NCBI GenBank assembly: GCA_965240325.2
Contig: OZ251241.1
Location: forward strand, 1,240,001-1,304,000
From: Rebecca billardiae RCC1528
Lineage: Eukaryota; Protista; Haptophyta
DNA length: 64,000 bases
Direction of reading: 5' to 3'
Part shown: in pieces, positions 4,104 through 50,760 of the stretch
Numbering within the stretch: position 1 is the stretch's first letter
How the letters are laid out: each line of letters starts with the position of its first letter
The notes under the pieces: generated by a model
The model's database searches: none
What the model was told of the DNA's origin: nothing
The model's input: only the letters and a program-made list of their open reading frames with translations
Position numbers and translations under genes: made by a program

Positions 4104-5018
4104 ATGAACTCCCGACAGATGACGTACGCAACCCGTTCGATGTCGCCCCACCCCGCGGCAGCACCGGGCGAGAAGCCGAATGGCGGCGAAGCAGTAGCCG
4201 CGGCGGAGGAGCACGAAGACCGCCTGCATCCCCGCTGGAAGGTGAGCGCCGCGGCTCGGCGGGCCCTCGAGCGCTCCTTCCGCATGGAGCACTACCCGCA
4301 GGCCGCGGAGCGCGAGCGCCTCGCTGTGCATTTTGGCACCACGCCGCGTCAGGTGCAGGTGTGGTTCCAGAATCGGCGGGTACGCGAGCAGAAGACGGAG
4401 GTCGAGAACGAACGCAGGCGTCTAGCTGGCCTGGCCGTCGAGGCGTACGCCCGTAATCAGCGCGCGTACGGCATCCCCCTCCAACCGCAGGCCGCGGGCC
4501 CGACGATGCCGAGCAGCGCGCCGACCCTGCTCGACCCAAGTCAAGCGACTTTGCTCAACAACGTCGCGAGCGTGTCCGCGATGCAGCCACCGCCAGGGGT
4601 GCAGCTATTTGCGGCTGCGGCTCCGCCGCCGCCGACCGTGACCGTGTTGGGCGTTGCACCCCGGACGGGCTGGCACTGCGCCGTCGCGAGCGTGCCGCAT
4701 ATGCCCGCTGTGCCGGGCCCGCAACCCAGTTGCAACGCACCGTGCGTGCAGACGACATACTCGCCCTCACCCGCAGGTTTCACGGCGTGGAGCCATGCCG
4801 GCAGCTACTACCACCCTCCAGAGGCACATGTGATGATGCCCATGGCGCCGGCCCTGCACTACACGCATCAGTGTGCGCCGCCACAACCTTGTGAGCAGCC
4901 GGCGAGTGTCCAGCCTCCGTACTCTCAGGGCATGTGGTGCGCGCACCCGAAGCGGGTGGGCTACGTGGGCGCAACCTCGCCCGTTTGCAGCCTTCTGGGC
5001 ATAACGTGCTGGCACTGA
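4104..5018 (+). CDS. Homeodomain transcription factor
   Basis: LERSFRMEHYPQAAERERLAVHFGTTPRQVQVWFQNRR is a canonical homeodomain (WFQNRR), followed by a Pro/Gln/Ala-rich tail. Intronless. Confidence 0.92.
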   Translation: MNSRQMTYATRSMSPHPAAAPGEKPNGGEAVAAAEEHEDRLHPRWKVSAAARRALERSFRMEHYPQAAERERLAVHFGTTPRQVQVWFQNRRVREQKTEVENERRRLAGLAVEAYARNQRAYGIPLQPQAAGPTMPSSAPTLLDPSQATLLNNVASVSAMQPPPGVQLFAAAAPPPPTVTVLGVAPRTGWHCAVASVPHMPAVPGPQPSCNAPCVQTTYSPSPAGFTAWSHAGSYYHPPEAHVMMPMAPALHYTHQCAPPQPCEQPASVQPPYSQGMWCAHPKRVGYVGATSPVCSLLGITCWH

Positions 5019-6260: not shown

Positions 6261-7553
6261 GGCCCGCGGTGCAGGGCGGAGCGCGCAGCGTGGAGCCCGC
6301 ACCAGCGGGCCCGAACCACGTTTCAAAAAGATCTTTGATCAAGAAAAAAGGGACGGGGGGCGGCGGAAAAAAAGGGACGGGGGGCGATTTTTAGGGCTGG
6401 CGGAGACCGAGTTTCGAGTTTTTGAGATCGCATTGAGAGGTCTATCAGGCCAAAAAAAACCGCGCCCAGCTGATTCCCTTAAGTAAAGTGCGATCTGGAC
6501 GTCAGCTGGACGTGACATTAGTGTAACGGTTCGTTACGAGCGAATCGTACTCGTCTTCCCGGATCGCGTGACGTCCGGACTGGGCCACATCCGGATCGTC
6601 GGAGGTGACGTGCCCCGGCGGCACGATGGGCGATGGCGGATATGCGGGACGGCGCCTGCACGTGCCTCCGGACCCGCCTCCCGCTTGCTGCTCACGCAGT
6701 CAGCTGCGACCGTGGCGCATGATCGCAGAAGCAGTGCCGGCAGTACGGCCTGCATCAGCTAGTGCCGCGCCGTCGTGGCGCGCGCGGTACGGTTGCGCGT
6801 TTGCAGCGCTCGCCCGGCTCGGCGACGGCACGCGCGTGCGGCTCAGGTGTGTCAAATGCGGTCTCGTCGGCGCGCTTTCGCCTGCCACCTCGTGCACCCG
6901 TGCCGCCAGTTTCATCGTCTTCATGAGGACTGCTGCTGCTGTCGCCATCCGCTCTCCATCACCCCGAGTCGCCGGTCGCGCGGCGCGCGCGGTAGGCACT
7001 AGGCACGGGGCGTACGGTCACTCACCCGTGCAACGGGTCAAGTGGCCAGAGTACGTCTGGTCGTTGGCTGGCACGGGCCGCAGCGCTAAAGCACCCTGCT
7101 GTCACACCCGACTCCTTCAGTACTCCGAGCTCCGCGGCACGACTCACTCGGCACGATCGCGGACGGGTCGGATCCGAGCTGATCAGCCAGAGTTGGACAC
7201 AGTTTGGCAGCTACTAGTAGTAATTCCGATGCCTATGGCACGATCGCGGACGGGTCGGATCCGAGCTGATCAGCCAGTTGGACATTTGGCAGCTAGTTGT
7301 CAGACGGACGTCCGATTTGACGACCGGTGCCGGGTGCGGTCTCAGGTCCGCTGCTGTGATTGTGTGTAGTGTGAATGAGTCTCGCGGTCGCGCAGGCAGG
7401 GCGACGGTCGGACTAATATAGCTTCAGTCATCTCAGAACCGACTTCAACTGGCGAACTGCCACTACGGCGGAGAGCCGCGATTGCACGGCCACCGCGGGC
7501 CCCCAACTGCGTTGATTCTATGCAGAAAAGGACCGCGGAACGCGGTCATATAA
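6260..7553 (+). mobile_element. Non-autonomous Helentron/Helitron2-like element (1.3 kb)
   Basis: 5' GGCCCGCGGTG (6261-6271) pairs with subterminal CACCGCGGGCC (7491-7501). Hairpin GACCGCG-GAA-CGCGGTC (7531-7547) then ATATAA. Both ends are homologous to the element at 48678-53108. Confidence 0.72.
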
Positions 7554-10881: not shown

Positions 10882-11871
10882 CTAGTCATCCACGTCCGCT
10901 GCCAGAGAAGTTAGCGAGCGCTGGCGCAGCAAGTCTGTGTGCTGGAGCCGGCCGTTGGCATCGAATGGCGGCTGCGCCTGCCCCTGAATGGTCACGTTGC
11001 GGTCGTCGTAGATCGCGACGATGCGAGGCTCGAGCTCGAGCGCGCCGCGGACGCCACCGAGGCAGCCGACACACTCCCATGCAAGCACGTGCTTGCCGTA
11101 GATGGCGGACGACATCGCAATGTCGATGAGGTGGAGCTGCCCGCCGCAGCGCACGCGCATGCGCCCGCCCTGGATGGAGTGCCCCATCACCATGCGCGCG
11201 GCGCCCAGCTCGTCGAGCGCCTGTCGTGCCAGCCCGCAAGCGTGCGGCTCCGACAGCTCGTGGTACCCGCGGTACCAGAGGGGGCCGTGCTCGCCGAGCA
11301 CGCTCGCGCGCTGCATGGCCCACGAAGAGCCGAGGGCGCGGGAGAGCTCCGCGTTGATGCCGTCGATGCCGACGGCGGCCCACTGCTTGTTGATGCCCGC
11401 GTGCACGAACACCGTGTCCCCGAGCTTGAGAGCCGCCGGCCGCGCGCGCAGCCACTGACCGAGCGCACCAGATGCGCTGAAGGCGCGCGCGCGCGCCGTC
11501 CTGCCGCCAAACAGCGTGTAGTCAGTCGCGTTCACGTACCGCAGGTCGCCGGCGAGGTTCATCGACTCGTGGTTGCCGAGGAGGTTGTGCACCTCGCCGC
11601 CTTGCTGCGGTGCCTCGGCCGCGAGCCGCTGGAAGAGCTCGTACAACAGCTTGCTCTCAGCGCCGCGGTCGACGAGGTCGCCCGTCTGCACCAGCACCGT
11701 GTCCCCGCCGCACCAGCTGCCAGACGCATCCACGAGCCCTCCGAGTCGAAGTGCGCGGTAGGCCGCGCCCAGATCGCCGTGCAAGTCGCCGATGGCGACC
11801 AGCCGACGCTCGTGCGTGACGAAGGCAGCAGCCAGGCCCACAACGAGGGCTCCAAGGGCGGCAGCTGCCAT
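10882..11871 (-). CDS. Shewanella-like protein phosphatase (calcineurin-like metallophosphoesterase) with signal peptide
   Basis: GDLHG, GDLVDRG, GNHE, FVHAG, GPLWYRGY, MVMGH and ID.AMS motifs; hydrophobic N-terminus. Confidence 0.92.
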   Translation of the reverse strand: MAAAALGALVVGLAAAFVTHERRLVAIGDLHGDLGAAYRALRLGGLVDASGSWCGGDTVLVQTGDLVDRGAESKLLYELFQRLAAEAPQQGGEVHNLLGNHESMNLAGDLRYVNATDYTLFGGRTARARAFSASGALGQWLRARPAALKLGDTVFVHAGINKQWAAVGIDGINAELSRALGSSWAMQRASVLGEHGPLWYRGYHELSEPHACGLARQALDELGAARMVMGHSIQGGRMRVRCGGQLHLIDIAMSSAIYGKHVLAWECVGCLGGVRGALELEPRIVAIYDDRNVTIQGQAQPPFDANGRLQHTDLLRQRSLTSLAADVDD

Positions 11872-39438: not shown

Positions 39439-40096
39439 CCAAACACTGCTAGTATTAGTGCCGCCAACCCTTTCGAGCGTCTCTACTGCCATGGCTGTGT
39501 CGAGATGCAGTCCACTCACATCATCGTTGAGTGGCATCATGTGAGTTGGGGACTCTTCGCCGTACCGGACACTGCCCTACAGTGAGCAGCACGCGCGACT
39601 ACCGCTCACTCCATGCGCTGCATCGCCGTGGCAGCCAGTCGGTGCAGCGTCCGCGGCTCTCGGCCCGATGGGGCGCGGACGGGCGGGTCCCAGCGTCCTG
39701 AATGAGTCGGATGATGAATCAATCAGCCGCATGCATCCACGCATGCTCCATCAAGCCGGCAGACTCGCCGCCACGGTGGGGCTGCGGCCGTGCGTGCGCG
39801 TGCGCAGCGGGAGGCCGGGCTGGGAGCGCGCGGGCAGTCCCGAAGCGTTCGCCAGTCCGGTGGGCTAACCCTCGCAGATTGATATGAGAAGCGTCTGCGA
39901 ACGTTCGTGTCCCGGACTGCGGGGGCTGAGTGGAAAGGTGGAGTTGGGCAGTTGCGACTCGGGCTGACGAAGCAAGGCGTGTGCGCGGGCGCGCCCCCGC
40001 CGCCGCTTGTCGCGCACCAGCCCCCTCGTTCGCGGGGAGGGAGGGGAGAGCACTGCCCTCGAGCCCTGCCCCCACAACAAGCGCGCGGCACTCCCC

Positions 40097-40180
40097 ATGA
40101 CGTACTCGCCCGGGGCAGGCACGCCGGGCGGCGCGGGGCCGACGCACGGGATCGGCACGTCGCAGCGCCTCGCCGAGAAG

Positions 40181-40214
<34 letters not shown>

Positions 40215-41448
40215 AGAAGGCGGCCGCGGCCGCGGCCGCAGTCGCGCGCGCGCAACCGCCGGCCCGCACGGGCAAGTCGGGCGCGGGCTCGTCGAGGGGC
40301 GGCGGCGGGCGCGGCGGGCGCGCGGAGGAGCGCATGTCCACACCGCCGCCCGACGACGCGCACGCGCACGGCGGCGCCGACGCCGGCGCCGCCGCCGGGA
40401 GCGGCAGGGGCGGCGGCAAGCATGCAGCGGGCGCCGACGGCGCGTACGCAATCGACCGGCGGCACAGCGTGCAGCTGTCGAAGAAGGTGACGAACACGGA
40501 CCTGAGCATGAACCGGATCACCCTGCCCGACCCGGTCCACGTCGAGTCCTTCCTCGGGCGCGACGCCCGCGACATCGACGCGCACGACGCGCGCGGCGGC
40601 CGGTGGCCGCTCAAGTTCCGCCACTGGTCCAACCGCACCTCACGCATGTACATCCTGTGCGGCGTGCAGCCGTTCTTCGCGAAGACGGGCGCGAAGGTGC
40701 GCGCGCGCCGAGCGCGCGGGCGTGAGCGCGCGCGCCCAGCCCGCCGCGCCCCGCCGCGCCCGCCGTGGATGCCCCGGGCGCGCGCGCGCGCGCGCGCGTG
40801 CGCGCCGCGCATGCACACGCGCGCATGCATGGCGGCGCGCGTGCATGCGCGGCGCGCGCACGCGCCGCGGGTCGCGGGCCGGGCCCCGGCCGGGCGTGCG
40901 CGCTCGGCCACCCGCGCGCGTGCACCCCCTGACCTTCCCCCCGCCGCCCGCCCGCCCGCCCCGCGCCCCGCCCGCCGCCGCAGACCGGTGCCACCTTCCA
41001 GATGGCCAAGGTCGGCGCGCGGCTGCTGATCGGCATCGACGAGTCGACCATCGACAAGGGCGGCAAGGGCAAAGGCTCGAAGAAGAAGGCGCCGAGCCGC
41101 TCGGGCGTGCGCCCCGCGGCGGGCGAGAAGTCGGGCGGCGGCGGGGTCAAGCGCAAGGCCGGCGGCGCCGCGCCGCCCGCCGCGCGCCGCCCCGCCGCCT
41201 CCTCGCGCAAGGCGGACGCCAAGGCCGGCGGCTCGGCCTACAACAAGAAATCGCGCTCCGGGCGGCGCCCGCCCAAGGTGGCGCGCCGGGACGCGCCCGC
41301 GCGCGCCGCGGACGACGAGGAGGAGGAGGAGGAGGAGGAGGAGGATGGCGAGGAGGAGGAGGAGGGCGAGGAGACGGACGGCGAGGAGGACGACGGCGAG
41401 GAGGGCGAGGAGGGCGAGGAGGACGAGGACGCCGACTCGGAGGAGCTG

Positions 41449-41487
<39 letters not shown>

Positions 41488-42807
41488 GAGGAGGACGAGG
41501 AGGCGGCCGCGGCGGCCGACGCGGCGGCCGCGGCCGCCGCCGACGTCGACGGCTCCTTCCCGTACCCGCACGCGGGCTCGGAGCACGGCTCGCTCTCGGA
41601 CGGGCACGACGACGTCGACGCCCGCGCGAGGGGCGCGCACGACGCCGCGCACGCCGGCCGCGCCGCGCGCGCCGCGCCCACCGCCGGCGGGCACGCGCGC
41701 GGCGCGGCCGCGGACGGCGGCGCGCATGCGCGCTCCGACAAGGCTGGCGCGCGCGCGGCCGGCGGCGCCCGCCGCGCGGCCGGCGCGCACGACGGCGGCG
41801 GCCGCGCGGCGGAGCGCGCGAACGGCCGCGCGGCGGGCCGCGCGAACGGCCGCGCCGCGCCCGCCGCCTCCGCGCCGCGCGCCGCCGCCAAGCGCCCGCG
41901 CGCCGGCGGCGCTGCGCACGCGCGCGCGCGCAAGCACGCCGGCGCCGCGGCCGTGATGGCGCAGATGGCGGCGCGCGAGCGCGCGCGGTACGCGCACGGC
42001 GACGTGGACGTGGAGGGCGAGGGCGAGGGCGCGTACGCACATCCGCACGCGCAGCAGTACGACGCGCACGCCGCGCCGCCGCCCGCACACCAGTACCCGC
42101 CGCCGCCCGCTCAGTACGAGCCGCCGCCGCCGAGCGCGACGCCCGCGCCCGCCGCCAAGCCGGGCGTGCGTCCGGAGCCGGGCCGCATCCGCGTGTGGTG
42201 GGCGCTAGAGAGCCGCTGGTACTACGGCACCGCGCACGCGGCGCACGCGTGCGGCGCGCAGCTCGTGGCGTACGACAACGGGCACTGGCTCTGGCACGAC
42301 CTGCTCGACGAGACTTGGCAGTACGTCTTGCCGGAGGTCGGCGCGGCACCCGAGCACGCGGCGCCGGGCGCGCACGAGGCCGCGGCCGAGCCGGCCGGCG
42401 CGGGCGCGGCCGGCTGGGGCGACGGCGCGGCGGGCGGCGCGGCGGACGCGGCGGCGGTTGCGGCTGCGGCCGCGGCCGCGCCGAGCGCCGCGCCGCCGCC
42501 GCCCGGCGCGAAGGCCGAGCCTGAGCTCGCGGCCGCCGGCGCCGTGCCGGCGGAGAGCGCGGAGGCCGCCGCCGCGGCCGCGCTGTGCAGCTCGGCTGCA
42601 GGCATCGCCGCGCCCGCGCCCGCCGCGCCCGCGCCCGCCGCGCCCGCGCCCGCCGCGCCCGCGCCCGCCGCACCGCCGGCCGACGCGCATGCGGCCGCGC
42701 TGCTGCGCAAGCGGCGGCAGGAGGGCTCGCTCGCGGGCGAGGATGGCATGGACCAAATGGATTGGCTGTACGCGCTCGAGACTGAGCTCGACACCTCGCT
42801 GCTGTGA
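40097..42807 (+). CDS. B3 DNA-binding domain (LAV/VAL-like) + acidic tract + Tudor-like domain protein
   Basis: LSKKVTNTDLSMNRITLP...WPLKFRHWSNRTSRMYILCGVQPF. Intron at 40697-40983 continues TGATFQMAKVGARLLIG. Poly-D/E tract. RIRVWW..ESRWYYG..LVAYDNG..DL.DETW is Tudor-like (PDS5/MSH6 type). Confidence 0.82.

Positions 42808-44226: not shown

Positions 44227-44260
<34 letters not shown>
44112..44260. repeat. ~37-bp tandem duplication plus (TA)n tract
   Basis: tgagccatcgcgggcgacgactactagctatatat occurs twice. Confidence 0.85.
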
Positions 44261-44839
44261 CCTCATCACTTCCGAGGCTCTGACTCTGTCCTCTGCTCCT
44301 CACCCCGAGTCACCCGCCGGCCACTAGTTGACGATGACGGTCATGACGTGTATGAATATAAGTGCCGGCCCCGCGAATCGCCGACTCCGAGGCGGCAACG
44401 CGCACGCTCACAGATGGGCGCCGAGTCTGAGTCACACGCAACGGACAACGGTCCGAAGTAGACGTAGTCGTCATCCGAGACATCAGCGCGCACATGCTGA
44501 TGCATCGTCCCCCGTCTATCCTCATCCTGAGGTCAGTCATCCTGCTTGAATCAGTACCGTTTACGCGACACGGTCACGGTCTGTCGGTCACGGACCGGAA
44601 TCTGCCACTGCTCTGCCGCGGAGAGCCGCGCCCTCCGGCTCCGGACCGTGCATGAGTAGTCGGGCTGCCTGTCTCTTATAAGGCCGTAAATTGAGTCATC
44701 TAGAATAATTAGTATGTCAGTCACGCACGTCTGGCGGCTGGATGGTCGTCGGCCGCCAGTCGTGGACTCCGCGCCTGCTCCGTGCTCGGATGCGTGTGCG
44801 ACGGTGGCCATGGAGCCGTTCGGGACGCCAGGTGCAGCG

Positions 44840-45832
44840 TCAGCAGCCATCAAGCTGGCGCAAGGTGTGCTTGAGCGCGGGCATGAGCACGGCCAGGTTC
44901 TCGCGCACCGCGTTCGGCCGACCCGGCAGGTTGACCACAAGCGTCTTCCCGCGAATCCCCGCCACGCCCCTCGAGAGCATCGCGTGCGGCTGCGAGGGCA
45001 GAGCGCGCAGCAGCACGGCCTCTGCAATGCCCGGGACGAGCCGCTCGCACGCGGCGCGCGTGGCCTCGGGCGTGACGTCGCGCGGCGAGCAGCCGGTGCC
45101 GCCGGTGGTGAGGATGAGGCGGCACGCGGGCTCACCGCTCTGCTCCGGCGCGCTCCACGCCTTGAGCGTGCCCTCGATCTGCGCCAGCTCGTCCGGCACG
45201 ACGGCCGTGCGCCGCACGCGCACGCGCCACGCGCCCGTGCGCGCGCCGTACTCCTCGAGAGCCCGCTGCGTCTCTGGGCCGCTCAGGTCTTCGTACACGC
45301 CGGCGGAGGCGCGGTCGCTGACGGTGAGCACACCCACCTCGAGCTCATAGTCCGGCTCCGCCGGAGTCGGCGCGGCCGGCGCGACGCCGCCCTTGGGCGC
45401 GGCGCACGCGAGCGCGCTCGATTCGACGCAGCACACATCTGAGAGGGGCGGCGGCACGTGCGGCCGCGAAGGGCCGTGCTCAGCGTGGTGCGCGGTGGAG
45501 CTCTCGAAGAGCGCGAGCTGCTCGGGCGTGGCCTTCGCCTGATGCGTCGCCTTCCACTCCTTGTACGGCACGCCGTACACGTGCAGCAGCGCGTCGTCGT
45601 ACCCACCCGGCAGCCGGAGGCCCAGCTCCTCCGAGCCTCGGAGGTACCACTTGGACAGGCAGTTGCGGCAGAAGCCGGCGAGGTTCATCAGGTCGATGTT
45701 CTGCACGCTCGGGCGGTCGCGGAGGTGCTGCACCAGCGCGCGGAACGCGAAGGCCTCGAGCGCCTCGGAGGACGCGCGTGCCTCCGCATCGGCGTCGTGC
45801 TCGTGGTGGTGGTGGTGCGGTGCGCTCGCCAT
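44840..45832 (-). CDS. DUF1244 domain fused to MogA/MoaB-type molybdopterin adenylyltransferase
   Basis: N-terminal VQNIDLMNLAGFCRNCLSKWY...VYG.PY.EWK..HQ; C-terminal LTVSDRAS...EDLSGP, TTGGTG.SPRDVTPEAT, LSRGVAGIRGKTLVVNLPG. Confidence 0.9.
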   Translation of the reverse strand: MASAPHHHHHEHDADAEARASSEALEAFAFRALVQHLRDRPSVQNIDLMNLAGFCRNCLSKWYLRGSEELGLRLPGGYDDALLHVYGVPYKEWKATHQAKATPEQLALFESSTAHHAEHGPSRPHVPPPLSDVCCVESSALACAAPKGGVAPAAPTPAEPDYELEVGVLTVSDRASAGVYEDLSGPETQRALEEYGARTGAWRVRVRRTAVVPDELAQIEGTLKAWSAPEQSGEPACRLILTTGGTGCSPRDVTPEATRAACERLVPGIAEAVLLRALPSQPHAMLSRGVAGIRGKTLVVNLPGRPNAVRENLAVLMPALKHTLRQLDGC

Positions 45833-46037
45833 TCGCGTGTTACCTGCGCGTCGCGAACGCTTTTGTACCGATCATAAAAAGCTCAAGGAAGCGGCTTGCC
45901 GCCAGCCGAGCCCGGCAGCCATCGTTGATGCGTTGTCCGCGTGGCTGCAAGCCCTCCCTCCCCTGCCGCGGCCCGGCTGGCGCTGAGCTCCGCGCGCAAT
46001 CGCGTCGTCGAGCACGGCCACATCGCGAGCGCGCGCG

Positions 46038-48297
46038 ATGCTCAGGCTGCTGCCCCGGGGCGTGGCCCTCCTCTCGCGGCCGGCGGTGGCATCCCGCGTG
46101 CTCGCGCGCCAACTGCCGTGCAGCGCGCGCTGGCTCAGCACCGAGCAGAGCTCGGCCGCGAGTGCGCCGCCGGCCGATGGCGTCGCGAGCAACGCGCCGC
46201 CGGACGCAGCAGAGGACGTGGCCGCGTCGACGACGAGCGACACGTCGGTGTTCTTGCGGCTGCTGAAAAGCCGCATGGCTAAGGACCAGCCCGACCAGGT
46301 GATCGAGCTCTTCAACGAGCGCGCGGCCGCGGGCGCCGAGCTGCCCGTGCAGGCTTGGAGCGTGCTCTTCAGCGCGTATCAGATCCGGGGCGAGAGCAAG
46401 GCGACGGTGCTCGCGCGGTTCGGCGAGATGAAGGAGAAGGGGCACACGCCCGACGCCGAGACGTACGACGCCGTGCTCGCCTGCTGCGCCGCCGCCTCCA
46501 GCGGCGACAGCGCGAGCGACGTGTCGGACGCGGTCGCCCTTCGTGAGGAGATGGTGGCGGCGAGCGTGCAGCCGTCCCTCAGCACGTTCGAGTCGCTGAT
46601 AACGGTGTACCTCGGCGCGGGCGACGTGCCCAGCGCGCGCACGGTGATGGAGGAGATGTGCGTCGCGCGCCGCGCCACTCGCCGCGCGCCGCCGCCACAC
46701 CGCCGCCACCCGCTGAGGCTGAGCGCTCGCCGGCTGGCCGCGCGCGCGCGCGCCGCGCGCCGCGCAGGCACCTGAGCCGCGTTGCCGGTCGTTACCGCGC
46801 GAGCATCGCGTACCTCTCGTCGTGCCTGACGAGCGGCCAGCTCGACGAGGCCGTCACCTACCTCAACGAGCTGCACGCCAACCAGCGCCCGCCCGGCGGC
46901 AACGACATGCGCCGGCTCCTGAAGGGATTCACCTCAAAGCGTCACCTGCAGGGTGCGATGACGTCCGCCGAGATGATGCTCGAGCTGCAGGACACGTTCG
47001 ACCCGATGCCGCTGATCGTGACGATGGCGAACCTGCACGCGTTCGACGAGCAGCCCGCCCGCGCCGAGCTCCTCCTCTCCAAGTGCGTCAAGCTGATCCG
47101 ACCGGACTTGCAGACCGGCGCGTACTGGAACAAGGACAGGCTTCACGTTCTCACGAGGTGCCTTCCGCTGCTGCCGGACGTGCACGCCAAGATGAGCGTG
47201 CTCAACGTGCTCAACGTGCGCGCGCGCGGGGGGCACGCGCGCGCGCCGAGCGCCGCCGCCGCGCGAGGCCCTGACCGACCGCCCGCCCGCCCGCGCGCGC
47301 GCCGTCCGCCGCCCGCGCTGCGCGCTGCCCCGCCGCCGCCGCAGCTGCGCCGCCACCGCTCGCGCGAGCTGATGCGCGAGGTGATCAAGGTGGCGGAGGG
47401 CGGCGTGGGGGCGGTGGACGACGCGTACCACGCGCTCGAGGACCTGGCGAACACGGGCGTGCCCGTCGCGGTCGGCACGATCAACTCGATCATCCTCATG
47501 TGCGGCCACGTCCGAGGTGCGCGCGCCGGCGCGCGGGCGGGCGCTCGCGCGCGCTCGCGCGCGAGTGCGCGTGCGTGCCGCGCGCGGCCCGACGCGTGTC
47601 GCCCCGTCCGTTCGCGCGCGCAGACCTCGACCGCGCGGTGCAGACGTTCGAGGCGATCAAGAAGCCGCCCTTCGGCCTCGCCCCGGACGTGGACTCGTTC
47701 AACGCGCTCATGATGGCCGCGTTCCGCGAGAAGGAAGTCGGGGCGGTCGCGAATGTGCACGTGATCATGCAGGAGGAGGGCGTGAGGCCCAACGGCGAGA
47801 CCTTCCGCATCCTGATCATGTCCAAGCTGCACCAGAACAACGTGGTCTCGGCGCACGAGCTGCTGCAGCAGGCGGCGGACGCGGGCGTGCCGGCCCCGGG
47901 CCAGTACAGCGCGCTGATCAGCTTCCACCTGGGTATCCGCACGATGGGCGTGAACGGCGCGCGCCGGCCCGACACGGCAAAGGCGCTCGCGCTGCGCGAC
48001 GCGGCGACGGAGCTGGGGCTGCAGCTGAACACGAGGGTGAAGGAGGACCTGGAGCGCGCGGAGGCCGAGCTGGCGCAGCGTGCCAAGGCGTCGTCCTCGT
48101 ACGAGGAGGAGGTCGCGCCCGTGATGGCCGCGGCCGCGGCCGAGGCGGCGGGCGCGGCCGTGTCCGAGGCGGCGGCGGCGGCGGCGGTGGGCGGCGCTGC
48201 GCCGAGCGGCGGCGGCGGCGGCGCGGACAGCGGCGCGGAGCACGCTGACAGCACAGCAGCAGCCAGTTCAACCACCTCGTCGTCAGCAGGGGCGTGA
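46038..48297 (+). CDS. Mitochondria-targeted pentatricopeptide-repeat protein, ~4 exons
   Basis: Arg-rich presequence; PPR-like TPDAETYDAVL, QPSLSTFESLI, APDVDSFNALM, RPNGETFRILI. Introns at ~46658-46767, ~47217-47344 and ~47510-47623. Confidence 0.8.
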
Positions 48298-48677
48298 GCC
48301 GAGGCGCGCGCGCGCGCGGCGCGCCTCACTGCTCGGCGCCGGCGATCGTCGGAGGGCTCGCATCACGACGCCGACCATCTCTCCTATGGCGCTCGACGAC
48401 GCGCTCGATCTTGACGACGTCGCGCTGAGGTCGGCGTCGGCTGCGCGCTGATGTCTGTCTGCTGACACGCGGCCTCATGACGTGATATGTCAGACCCCGC
48501 GTTCCCGCCGTCACCCGTCACGTGACTACGTACCGCGCGTGAAAGATATATACATGCGCATGTATGCCGCCGCGGCGCCATCATCGATTCATCGTCACTC
48601 GTCTGAGAATAGTATTAATTAATATATATATGCCGATGCGTCGTAAACTCGTCGTATCAGTAGTATAGTAATAATAA

Positions 48678-50760
48678 TGGCCCGCGGTGTAGGGCGGAGC
48701 GCGTAGCGTGGAGCCCCGCCGGGGGCCCTCACTACGTTGTCAAAAAGATCTTTTGATCAAAGAAAAGGGGACGGGGGACGATTTTGAGGGGTGTTGGAGG
48801 GTGAGTTTTCGCTTTTTCGAGGGGTACGTTGGCCCATAGTGCTCTGCATTAGCAACTACGCGCTTGACGAAATAAGCGCGCCCACGCCATTCCGCATAAG
48901 TCGATGGACGGACGTGGGATCAGATACCCCGGGGGTGAAACAAGTGAGTATTTTTGTCATTCTTGTATGCTGGAGTACGAGTTTGCCGAGCGACGTTTGA
49001 TTGTTTTGGGTCGAAAACAGCTATGAGGCCAGATGCTTCTGAATAGCGCTTTGTTTAAACACCTACCCGCCTGTCTCGATGGATGAACCGCCTTATAATA
49101 TTAAAAGAGATCCTTTTGAATAGCGCTTGTTCAACCACATTACCCGCCTGCCTCGATGGATGAACCGCCTGTGCACTAATGTGAAACGAGATTCTTTGAA
49201 TGGCGCCTATGGCGGCTTGTTAAAACGTAACAAGTTACCCGCCTACAAACCGGGCCTAAGCCAAGGGCGGTAAGGGAACGTAACAAGTTACCCGCCTACA
49301 AACCGGGCCTAAGCCAAGGGCGGTAAGGGCTGTCAACTCCCAGTGGCGCCGAGTGGCGGAGGTTCCGTGCCCCTCAACTCGTGCGGCCTCGCGGCGCAGC
49401 GGCTAAGTCTCCTGGGGCGCCGCCCTGGAGGGCGCGTGGGGTGCGCACGCCGCGGGCTCCTGCGCCCGCGGCAGCGGCCGCGGACACGGCGCGCGTGGTT
49501 GGTCGCCTGCTAGACAGCACGTAGTACCCTCCCACGCCGCGCGCCGCGCTTGCCGGTGCCCTCGCCGTGCCTCAGGCCAGCCGCGCACGCGCGCCGCGCC
49601 AATGGCCAGCCGTGGCCACGAGCCAGCCGCCGGAGCGCGCGCGGTGCGCGGTGCGGTCGGCGCGGGTCGGGCGCGCGCCCGGGGCGAGGCTCGCGTATGA
49701 TGGGCGCGCGTCATGCCGCTGGCCCGCGGTGTAGGGCGGAGCGCGTAGCGTGGAGCCCCGCCGGGGGCCCTCACTACGTTGTCAAAAAGATCTTTTGATC
49801 AAAGAAAAGGGGACGGGGGACGATTTTGAGGGGTGTTGGAGGGTGAGTTTTCGCTTTTTCGAGGGGTACGTTGGCCCATAGTGCTCTGCATTAGCAACTA
49901 CGCGCTTGACGAAATAAGCGCGCCCACGCCATTCCGCATAAGTCGATGGACGGACGTGGGATCAGATACCCCGGGGGTGAAACAAGTGAGTATTTTTGTC
50001 ATTCTTGTATGCTGGAGTACGAGTTTGCCGAGCGACGTTTGATTGTTTTGGGTCGAAAACAGCTATGAGGCCAGATGCTTCTGAATAGCGCTTTGTTTAA
50101 ACACCTACCCGCCTGTCTCGATGGATGAACCGCCTTATAATATTAAAAGAGATCCTTTTGAATAGCGCTTGTTCAACCACATTACCCGCCTGCCTCGATG
50201 GATGAACCGCCTGTGCACTAATGTGAAACGAGATTCTTTGAATGGCGCCTATGGCGGCTTGTTAAAACGTAACAAGTTACCCGCCTACAAACCGGGCCTA
50301 AGCCAAGGGCGGTAAGGGAACGTAACAAGTTACCCGCCTACAAACCGGGCCTAAGCCAAGGGCGGTAAGGGCTGTCAACTCCCAGTGGCGCCGAGTGGCG
50401 GAGGTTCCGTGCCCCTCAACTCGTGCGGCCTCGCGGCGCAGCGGCTAAGTCTCCTGGGGCGCCGCCCTGGAGGGCGCGTGGGGTGCGCACGCCGCGGGCT
50501 CCTGCGCCCGCGGCAGCGGCCGCGGACACGGCGCGCGTGGTTGGTCGCCTGCTAGACAGCACGTAGTACCCTCCCACGCCGCGCGCCGCGCTTGCCGGTG
50601 CCCTCGCCGTGCCTCAGGCCAGCCGCGCACGCGCGCCGCGCCAATGGCCAGCCGTGGCCACGAGCCAGCCGCCGGAGCGCGCGCGGTGCGCGGTGCGGTC
50701 GGCGCGGGTCGGGTGCGCGCCCGGGGCGAGGCTCGCGTATGATGGGCGCGCGTCATGCCG
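48678..50760 (+). repeat. Near-perfect 1042-bp tandem duplication
   Basis: Units start at 48678 and 49720; identical ORFs at 48791 and 49833. Confidence 0.95.

Follow-up and report, generated by a model that had tools for sequence, protein, structure and literature searches.

A two-exon gene in a 64,000-nucleotide stretch of contig OZ251241.1 (positions 1,240,001 to 1,304,000; the window) is predicted to encode a protein that joins a B3 domain to a Tudor-like module (Table 1). The first domain is an LAV-type B3 domain by its sequence, by its DNA-reading residues and by the fold predicted for an orthologue. We consider it probable that the product binds DNA sequence-specifically through B3 and carries a Tudor-type module, and we lean slightly toward a protein that would read a DNA motif and a histone in combination. 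B3 factors are textbook "plant-specific" regulators, usually described from green plants and green algae only, and the locus is best explained as a nuclear gene of a Pavlova-group haptophyte.

The predicted product has about 807 amino acids (200 + 607 residues if translation starts at the first in-frame ATG, 40097). The Tudor-like domain lies some 350 residues downstream of the B3 domain, and each domain occurs once in the window. An orthologue from Pavlova sp. CCMP459 (P0122) carries a B3 domain followed by a Tudor domain, in the same order as the window protein, and the two proteins are 57% identical overall.

Table 1. Features of the B3-Tudor gene, in window coordinates
Feature	Position	Strand	Basis and remarks
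Two-exon gene	40097-40696 + 40984-42807	+	287-nt GT-AG intron between the exons
Exon 1, 200 amino acids	40097..40696	+	First in-frame ATG to donor AAG/GTGCGC, phase 0
B3 domain, N-terminal three quarters (profile positions 6-73 of 101)	40466..40696	+	phmmer, Pfam, identity to P0122 and P0121
B3 N-arm, KKVTNTDLSMNRITLP	within 40466..40696	+	
B3 C-arm, FRHWSNRTSRMYILCG	40616-40663	+	
Intron, 287 nt, GT...CAG, 89% GC, phase 0	40697..40983	+	Splits the B3 domain; loss of periodicity and change of frame
B3 last two strands, TGATFQMAKVGARLLIGIDES	40984..41046	+	Start of exon 2; BLASTP to P0122 and strands of the P0122 model
Basic Lys/Arg/Gly-rich linker (KKKAPSRS, KRKAGG, KKSRSGRRPPK)	41053..41310	+	14 Lys and 12 Arg in 86 residues
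Acidic tract, 64 residues (32 Glu, 20 Asp)	41311..41502	+	Composition
Tudor-like domain, GRIRVWWALESRWYYGTAHAAHACGAQLVAYDNGHWLWHDLLDETWQYVL	~42181..42330	+	PDB 7DE9 match; identity to P0122; cage residues
Ala/Pro-rich C-terminal tail and TGA stop (42805-42807)	42331..42807	+	Without family match

Sequence evidence for the B3 domain

A preliminary description of this DNA had singled out the peptide FRHWSNRTSRMYILCGVQP as resembling the B3 domains of the plant VAL and ABI3 proteins. This peptide is encoded at 40616-40672 on the forward strand, within an open reading frame (ORF) that spans 40007..41029 (+), and the resemblance holds. The query for the B3 searches was the exon 1 part of the domain (window 40454-40696 (+), 81 amino acids), with the last quarter of the domain outside the query. 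Against all solved structures, phmmer matches it best to Arabidopsis VAL1 (6fas, 5yzy and 6j9a; E 1.8e-6 to 2.1e-6), followed by FUS3 (E 3e-4) and LEC2 (E 3.2e-4), and no solved family besides these three scores below E 0.01. The FUS3 and LEC2 alignments extend over nearly all of exon 1, including the N-arm (NxD...R..LP). The same three families are the only solved matches at E <= 1 to the whole B3 domain of P0122 (LEC2, 6.5e-6; FUS3, 1.1e-4; VAL1, 4e-4).

The C-arm signature of LAV domains, R-x-W-x-N-x-x-S-R-M-Y-x-L-x-G, is present in the window protein and also in P0122 and in a related genomic sequence, P0131. Overall, the window B3 domain is about 25% identical to those of ABI3, FUS3 and LEC2, and 22-27% identical to plant and green-algal B3 domains.

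In the VAL1-DNA structure, the RY element is read by residues of which R309, W349, N351 and M356 make the key base contacts (PMC5934628). All four are kept in the alignments of the window domain, as are the VAL1 backbone contacts K297 and R347. The pattern of conserved contacts makes it very likely that the domain binds DNA in the same mode as VAL1.

Predicted fold of the orthologous domain

The AlphaFold2 model of P0122:126-242, a segment that is 55-58% identical to the exon 1 part of the window domain, is confident (pLDDT 86.2, pTM 0.79) and has seven strands plus helices. The orthologue is thus predicted to form the seven-stranded open barrel with two helices that is characteristic of B3 domains. 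The stretch of this model that corresponds to the start of exon 2 forms two of the strands (E92-98 and E101-107). The best Foldseek match is VAL1 6fas (TM 0.70/0.74, rmsd 2.3 A, 104 columns). VAL1, FUS3 and LEC2 lead the ranking (TM 0.67-0.78, rmsd 2.2-2.8 A) and are followed by ARF1, TEM1, RAV1 and NGA1, with a probability of 1.00 for all seven. A shape search of the ESM Atlas likewise places ABI3-like (TM 0.78) and VAL/HSI clusters on top.

Because bacterial restriction-enzyme domains have the B3 fold as well (PMC5934628), the domain could instead be the relic of a DNA-recognition module of restriction-endonuclease type (EcoRII-N or BfiI-C), taken up from bacteria and unrelated to the plant LAV family. 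An Atlas feature search does list an EcoRII-N cluster at 0.86, and the tenth-ranked match in the Atlas shape search is a bacterial cluster. However, the sequence matches are to LAV B3 domains only, the LAV-specific motif RxWxNxxSRMYxLxG is present in the C-arm, and the gene has a eukaryotic intron. In the structural ranking, where VAL1, FUS3 and LEC2 come first, the B3-like N-domain of the bacterial LlaJI.R1 is found far below (E 0.019). We regard a bacterial relic as exceedingly unlikely and an LAV-type B3 domain as the assignment that the searches point to.

Gene structure and conservation of the intron

The window is very GC-rich (56-84% per 2-kb bin), with 81% GC across 40-42 kb. In the exon 1 frame, GC content at the third codon position (GC3) is 0.9-1.0 from about 40070 to 40699. 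Between 40700 and 40969 the three codon positions are equally GC-rich and periodicity is lost, and from 40970 to about 42800 another frame shows the GC3 bias, at about 0.97. Codon-position GC therefore supports a two-exon model. A stop lies upstream in the exon 1 frame at 39965, and the ATG at 40097 is the presumed start codon. The first 120 residues of exon 1 are Ala/Gly-rich and of low complexity. A second ORF (41002..42807), in the other frame, holds the acidic tract and the Tudor-like stretch.

A stop at 40930 in the exon 2 frame restricts the acceptor to 40984 (CAG/ACC) or 41002 (CAG/ATG). With BLASTP, residues 1-24 of an exon 2 that begins at 40984 align to residues 214-237 of P0122 (E 3e-5), and P0122 passes without interruption at the intron site from the part that matches exon 1 directly into VGATFQLAWENEQFVIGLDESTTD. 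Since VGATFQLAWENEQFVIGLDESTTD aligns to the exon 2 start at 40984, this acceptor is settled, and the two exons together encode a single uninterrupted domain. The alternative acceptor at 41002 would remove the first of the last two B3 strands. The comparison with the orthologue indicates that the intron is genuine.

This intron follows the residue that lies 12 positions beyond the conserved G[VMA] in the C-arm, and both this site and phase 0 are common to the window and two other loci. One is in a second Pavlovales-like genome (L003, Logan run DRR621826), where the intron spans 1805-2097 (GTGAGC...CAG, 293 nt). The other is a divergent paralogue in Pavlovales sp. CCMP2436 (L006; intron 6362-6503, 142 nt). 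Because the divergent CCMP2436 paralogue has the same intron site and phase, the intron should predate the duplication of these B3 genes, and by this comparison it is old within the Pavlovales group. An intron shared with plant VAL genes, as a sign of common descent, was considered and rejected: the nearest intron in a lycophyte VAL gene (L007) lies 4 codons downstream and is in phase 1.

A separate feature of the intron is a cluster of four RY elements (CATGCA/TGCATG) within 38 bp (40810-40847), two of which overlap as CATGCATG. Dinucleotide shuffles of the intron average 0.31 elements, and none of 2000 reaches four. The cluster could be an autoregulatory site for the B3 domain of the gene itself. 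Counting against this idea, the intron consists of alternating purine-pyrimidine repeats, and the equivalent introns of L003 and L006 lack RY elements. An enrichment of RY elements across the whole window was rejected (38 observed, 38.5 expected).

The Tudor-like domain

The preliminary description had also proposed that the B3 domain is joined to a Tudor reader, and the sequence comparisons agree with this pairing. The window stretch alone matches PDB 7DE9, the Tudor domain of Arabidopsis RDM15, at E 0.003. A two-sequence profile of the window and P0122 improves this match to E 2.1e-5 over 46 of 63 positions, with E 0.26 for the runner-up in the PDB. Residues 472-528 of P0122 share 61% identity with the stretch (E 3e-23), and the same pairing of domains recurs in the orthologue.

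The RDM15 Tudor domain reads H3K4me1 with a cage formed by W616, Y623 and Y641 (PMC8184781). The corresponding residues are W, Y and Y in the window and W, F and Y in P0122, and the aromatic cage appears intact from this alignment.

Other regions of the protein

The remaining regions are recognized mainly by composition. The basic linker is a putative NLS-like region. The acidic tract that had been described earlier is present at 41311-41502, and its only Pfam matches (BSP_II and Nop14) are compositional. The basic linker, the acidic tract and the C-terminal tail are not conserved in P0122.

Neither exon has a Pfam match to the PHD-like zf_VAL1_N (PF25813) or CW (PF07496) fingers, whereas a comparable scan of a lycophyte VAL protein (P0130) detects both. 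The predicted product of about 807 residues contains 3 Cys and lacks CxxC. Neither exon translation holds an EAR motif when searched by pattern (LxLxL or DLNxxP), and Pfam finds no Auxin_resp (PF06507) or PB1 domain in either exon. Lacking the PHD-like (zf_VAL1_N) and CW fingers and the EAR motif, and having only 3 Cys, the protein is by its predicted composition not a VAL or ABI3 orthologue, though it is LAV-like in its B3 domain. An analogy with VAL proteins would suggest recruitment of Polycomb, but with the VAL fingers and the EAR motif absent, nothing here supports it.

Evidence against the interpretation

Several observations count against a B3-Tudor protein with these properties. For the B3 domain, the fold was computed for P0122:126-242 and not for the window protein, from an alignment of 11 rows that includes one plant VAL row. 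The Pfam B3 model (PF02362) matches the exon 1 part at E 0.0015 and 18.9 bits, under its gathering score of 30.1, and finds no match in P0122 at E <= 0.1. A Pavlovales paralogue (P0125) also scores under the gathering threshold (27.1 bits). Within the N-arm, S302, I307, V311 and K314 of VAL1 are replaced by T, M, T and D, and R306 is lost to a one-residue deletion. The C-arm has R in place of N352. These changes of contact residues mean that the DNA motif may differ from CATGCA, and the exact motif may not be that of VAL1.

For the Tudor-like module, no Pfam Tudor family matches at E <= 10. A single-sequence model of the piece reaches a pLDDT of 54.4, and from this poor model Foldseek returns nothing at E <= 0.001 and VIA-align nothing above Z 2.9.

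A rival reading is a real B3 protein whose "Tudor" is some other small beta-rich module that binds proteins or nucleic acids and is not a methyl-lysine reader. The weak top structural rows for the model include WWE domains, and a language-model match of 0.88 to a cluster of PTM/DIR17-like Tudor domains is a lead only. Against such a module stand the RDM15 profile match, besides which no PDB entry scores below E 0.1, and the three cage positions, which are aromatic in both species even though the proteins are 57% identical overall. In addition, the five strands of the model are predicted in the expected order. We consider a different kind of module unlikely and read the domain as a Tudor-type methyl-lysine reader.

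The RDM15 residues D643 and D645, which select for monomethyl-lysine, correspond to N and H in the window and to N and Q in P0122. The E647 and Q654 of the H3R2 pocket correspond to L and E in the window. The histone mark that is read is probably other than the H3K4me1 of RDM15, and these substitutions suggest that it is not predictable from RDM15.

Finally, both the splicing and the expression of the window copy are deduced by comparison with the orthologue and its transcript product. Because expression is judged from the orthologue only, the window copy might be a decaying, non-functional pseudogene that keeps recognizable domains, and its long low-complexity stretches and weak Pfam scores would fit such a history. 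However, the two exons remain open for 807 codons in total and show a strong codon-position bias throughout, domain residues are conserved relative to the expressed orthologue whereas linkers vary, and the key DNA-contact and cage residues are kept. A pseudogene is very unlikely on this evidence.

Relatives and host

Searched exhaustively with HMMER, 1.84 billion representatives yield ten matches to the exon 1 part of the B3 domain at E <= 0.001. P0122 (701 amino acids, 58% identity) comes from a complete ORF in a Pavlova sp. CCMP459 transcript contig (MMETSP1139, 2618 nt). P0121 (from ENA) and P0131 (from Logan run DRR621826), also at 58% identity, are genomic sequences in which the gene caller read through the intron. 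P0125 (KAJ1623370.1), from Pavlovales sp. CCMP2436, is a more distant paralogue. From the green lineage come a protein of 695 amino acids with two B3 domains in the green alga Chlorella sp. A99 (P0126) and a VAL protein with B3 and CW domains in the lycophyte Diphasiastrum complanatum (P0130). P0123, P0124, P0127 and P0128 are from environmental or unnamed sources. P0129, a JGI/IMG "hypothetical protein" of 547 amino acids, is internally repetitive and probably a spurious match.

Two LAV-like B3 domains in one chain occur both in P0126 and in P0127 (Logan, 688 amino acids), and the first of the P0127 domains scores 89.7 bits on Pfam B3. The B3 fragments P0123, P0124 and P0132 come from large contigs (49-144 kb; L004 is an example) of environmental eukaryotes. 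A scan of JGI metagenomes with the Pavlovales B3 alignment gives 276 pattern matches, of which none is confirmed. Word-indexed protein searches with the exon 1 ORF (B3 region) and with exon 2 (Tudor region) return no match; they need a length window and shared 5-mers, and so they say little.

The host is a non-green alga of the Pavlova group of haptophytes, as had been surmised of a non-green origin. This assignment follows from the B3 gene itself and from a DUF1244-MogA gene 2 kb away (44843-45832, minus strand), both of which are closest to named Pavlovales relatives. The closest named relative of the neighbor is in Pavlovales sp. CCMP2436 (63% identity), and the protein in the other haptophytes Chrysotila, Prymnesium and Tisochrysis is 43-50% identical. 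With identities of about 58-63%, the host is distinct from both CCMP459 and CCMP2436.

That surveys describe B3 factors as confined to Viridiplantae (PMC11685440), and that the closest solved relatives are all from Arabidopsis, might instead suggest contamination or an assembly artefact that brought in a B3 gene from a green alga or plant. Yet the gene sits inside a contiguous 64-kb window, has the extreme composition of its host (81% GC, GC3 about 0.97) and neighbors a gene whose closest named relative is in Pavlovales. Orthologues at 58% identity are found in the Pavlova sp. CCMP459 transcriptome and on another genomic contig with the same intron, and B3 domains of plants and green algae reach only 22-27%. 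A host-style intron had already been put forward as an argument against contamination, and its position and phase, common to two other Pavlovales loci, now exclude it. For practical purposes contamination is refuted, with a negligible chance of being correct, and a haptophyte nuclear gene is the explanation we retain.

A tree of 11 B3 rows, with none from the REM, RAV or ARF families, resolves only the clade of the window, P0122 and P0131 (94/96). With only this Pavlovales clade resolved, the tree supports no inference of a donor or direction of transfer. The ranking of solved structures favors a placement with LAV.

Other observations concern the surroundings of the gene. The fusion of DUF1244 and MogA is widespread: 7664 of 8000 scored candidates reach E <= 1e-10, and among the 120 matches listed, which include euglenids, diplonemids, dinoflagellates and haptophytes, nearly every one carries both Pfam domains. 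Elsewhere in the window are single-exon ORFs with a homeodomain (PF00046, E 4.5e-16; 4104-5018, plus strand) and with a calcineurin-like phosphoesterase domain (E 2.1e-11; 10882-11871, minus strand). Two independent Logan short-read contigs (ERR14847151 and ERR14847148) match window positions 44232-48704 with 100% identity, and both end precisely at 44232, a little short of the B3 gene and its very high GC content. These ends suggest that short-read assemblies break there, and such a break may explain why the product of the window gene is absent from the protein collections searched.

Proposed function

The predicted order of parts is a disordered N-terminus, the LAV-type B3 domain, the basic NLS-like linker, the acidic tract, the Tudor-like domain and a disordered tail. 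The B3 domain would dock its N- and C-arms into the major groove to read an RY-like element (CATGCA or a variant), as is expected from the conservation of the four key base-contact residues of VAL1. The Tudor cage could bind a methylated lysine, for which a histone tail is the most likely site. If both occur, the protein would act preferentially at those copies of its motif that lie in chromatin of one particular state, and the acidic tract may serve as an effector or as a histone-contact surface. This logic would be that of VAL1, which combines a B3 domain with histone-reading fingers, built from different parts.

A broader proposal, to which we give somewhat less than even weight, is that LAV B3 domains beyond Viridiplantae form a small pavlovophyte family with old, shared introns, which was acquired from a green alga early in the history of haptophytes or stems from an older ancestor, and one branch of which has a working methyl-lysine Tudor domain. 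A conserved, intron-bearing and expressed family of LAV-type B3 factors in haptophytes bears on the origin of B3 factors and is a test case for gene flow from green algae to haptophytes. Pairing B3 with Tudor without zinc fingers would also be a simple natural example of how the reading of a DNA motif is coupled to that of a chromatin state, and it can be compared with VAL1 and the ARFs. For haptophyte biology, the protein is a candidate sequence-specific regulator with a predictable motif.

Comparison with known systems

A 2024 survey finds bona fide B3 domains only in Viridiplantae (PMC11685440). A 2016 census counts one factor of the ABI3/VP1 family in the haptophyte Tisochrysis lutea and none in Pavlova sp. 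CCMP459 or in Emiliania (PMC4827209). The restriction of B3 to the green lineage that the preliminary description had cited agrees with surveys, but the Tisochrysis lutea entry is an exception to it. The census used the same CCMP459 proteome that holds P0122, and it missed this protein because Pfam finds no B3 domain in it; censuses based on Pfam thresholds miss the Pavlovales family. The Tisochrysis lutea factor is likewise a haptophyte B3 factor, counted in that census, and because of it (PMC4827209) a B3 domain beyond the green lineage is not a complete novelty. A literature search on B3 domains in haptophytes finds no published mention besides this entry, and we found no description of an architecture with B3 and a C-terminal Tudor domain.

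Arabidopsis VAL1/HSI2, together with VAL2, is among the closest known systems. Of the solved B3 domains, that of VAL1 is nearest both in sequence (E 1.8e-6) and to the predicted fold of the orthologue (TM 0.70-0.74). The window protein resembles it in the C-arm motif RxWxNxxSRMY and in joining a sequence-specific B3 domain and a predicted histone-mark reader in a single chain. It differs from VAL1 in several N-arm changes and a one-residue deletion. VAL1 consists of B3, a PHD-like finger, a CW finger and an EAR motif, whereas the window protein has B3 and a Tudor reader instead. If the Tudor assignment is right, the protein would be a non-plant analogue of the VAL1 switch that combines a DNA motif with a histone mark. 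In the AFL branch (ABI3, FUS3 and LEC2), no member has a Tudor domain, and similarity to the window protein is seen in B3 only. Among solved domains, only the Tudor domain of RDM15 is significantly similar in sequence to the C-terminal module, and no similarity to RDM15 is seen outside this stretch.

The auxin response factors (ARFs) are the only transcription-factor family described as joining B3 to Tudor-like folds, and in this they are alike. In ARFs the B3 domain is inserted in the first fold of a PHIP-type double Tudor-like scaffold whose second cage is blocked (PMC11685440). The window protein, unlike the ARFs, has a single Tudor domain about 350 residues after an LAV-like B3 domain, beyond disordered linkers. 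Because both the arrangement and the B3 subfamily are different from those of ARFs, the pairing in the window protein looks independent and, if it is confirmed, would be a second invention of a B3-plus-Tudor factor beside the ARFs.

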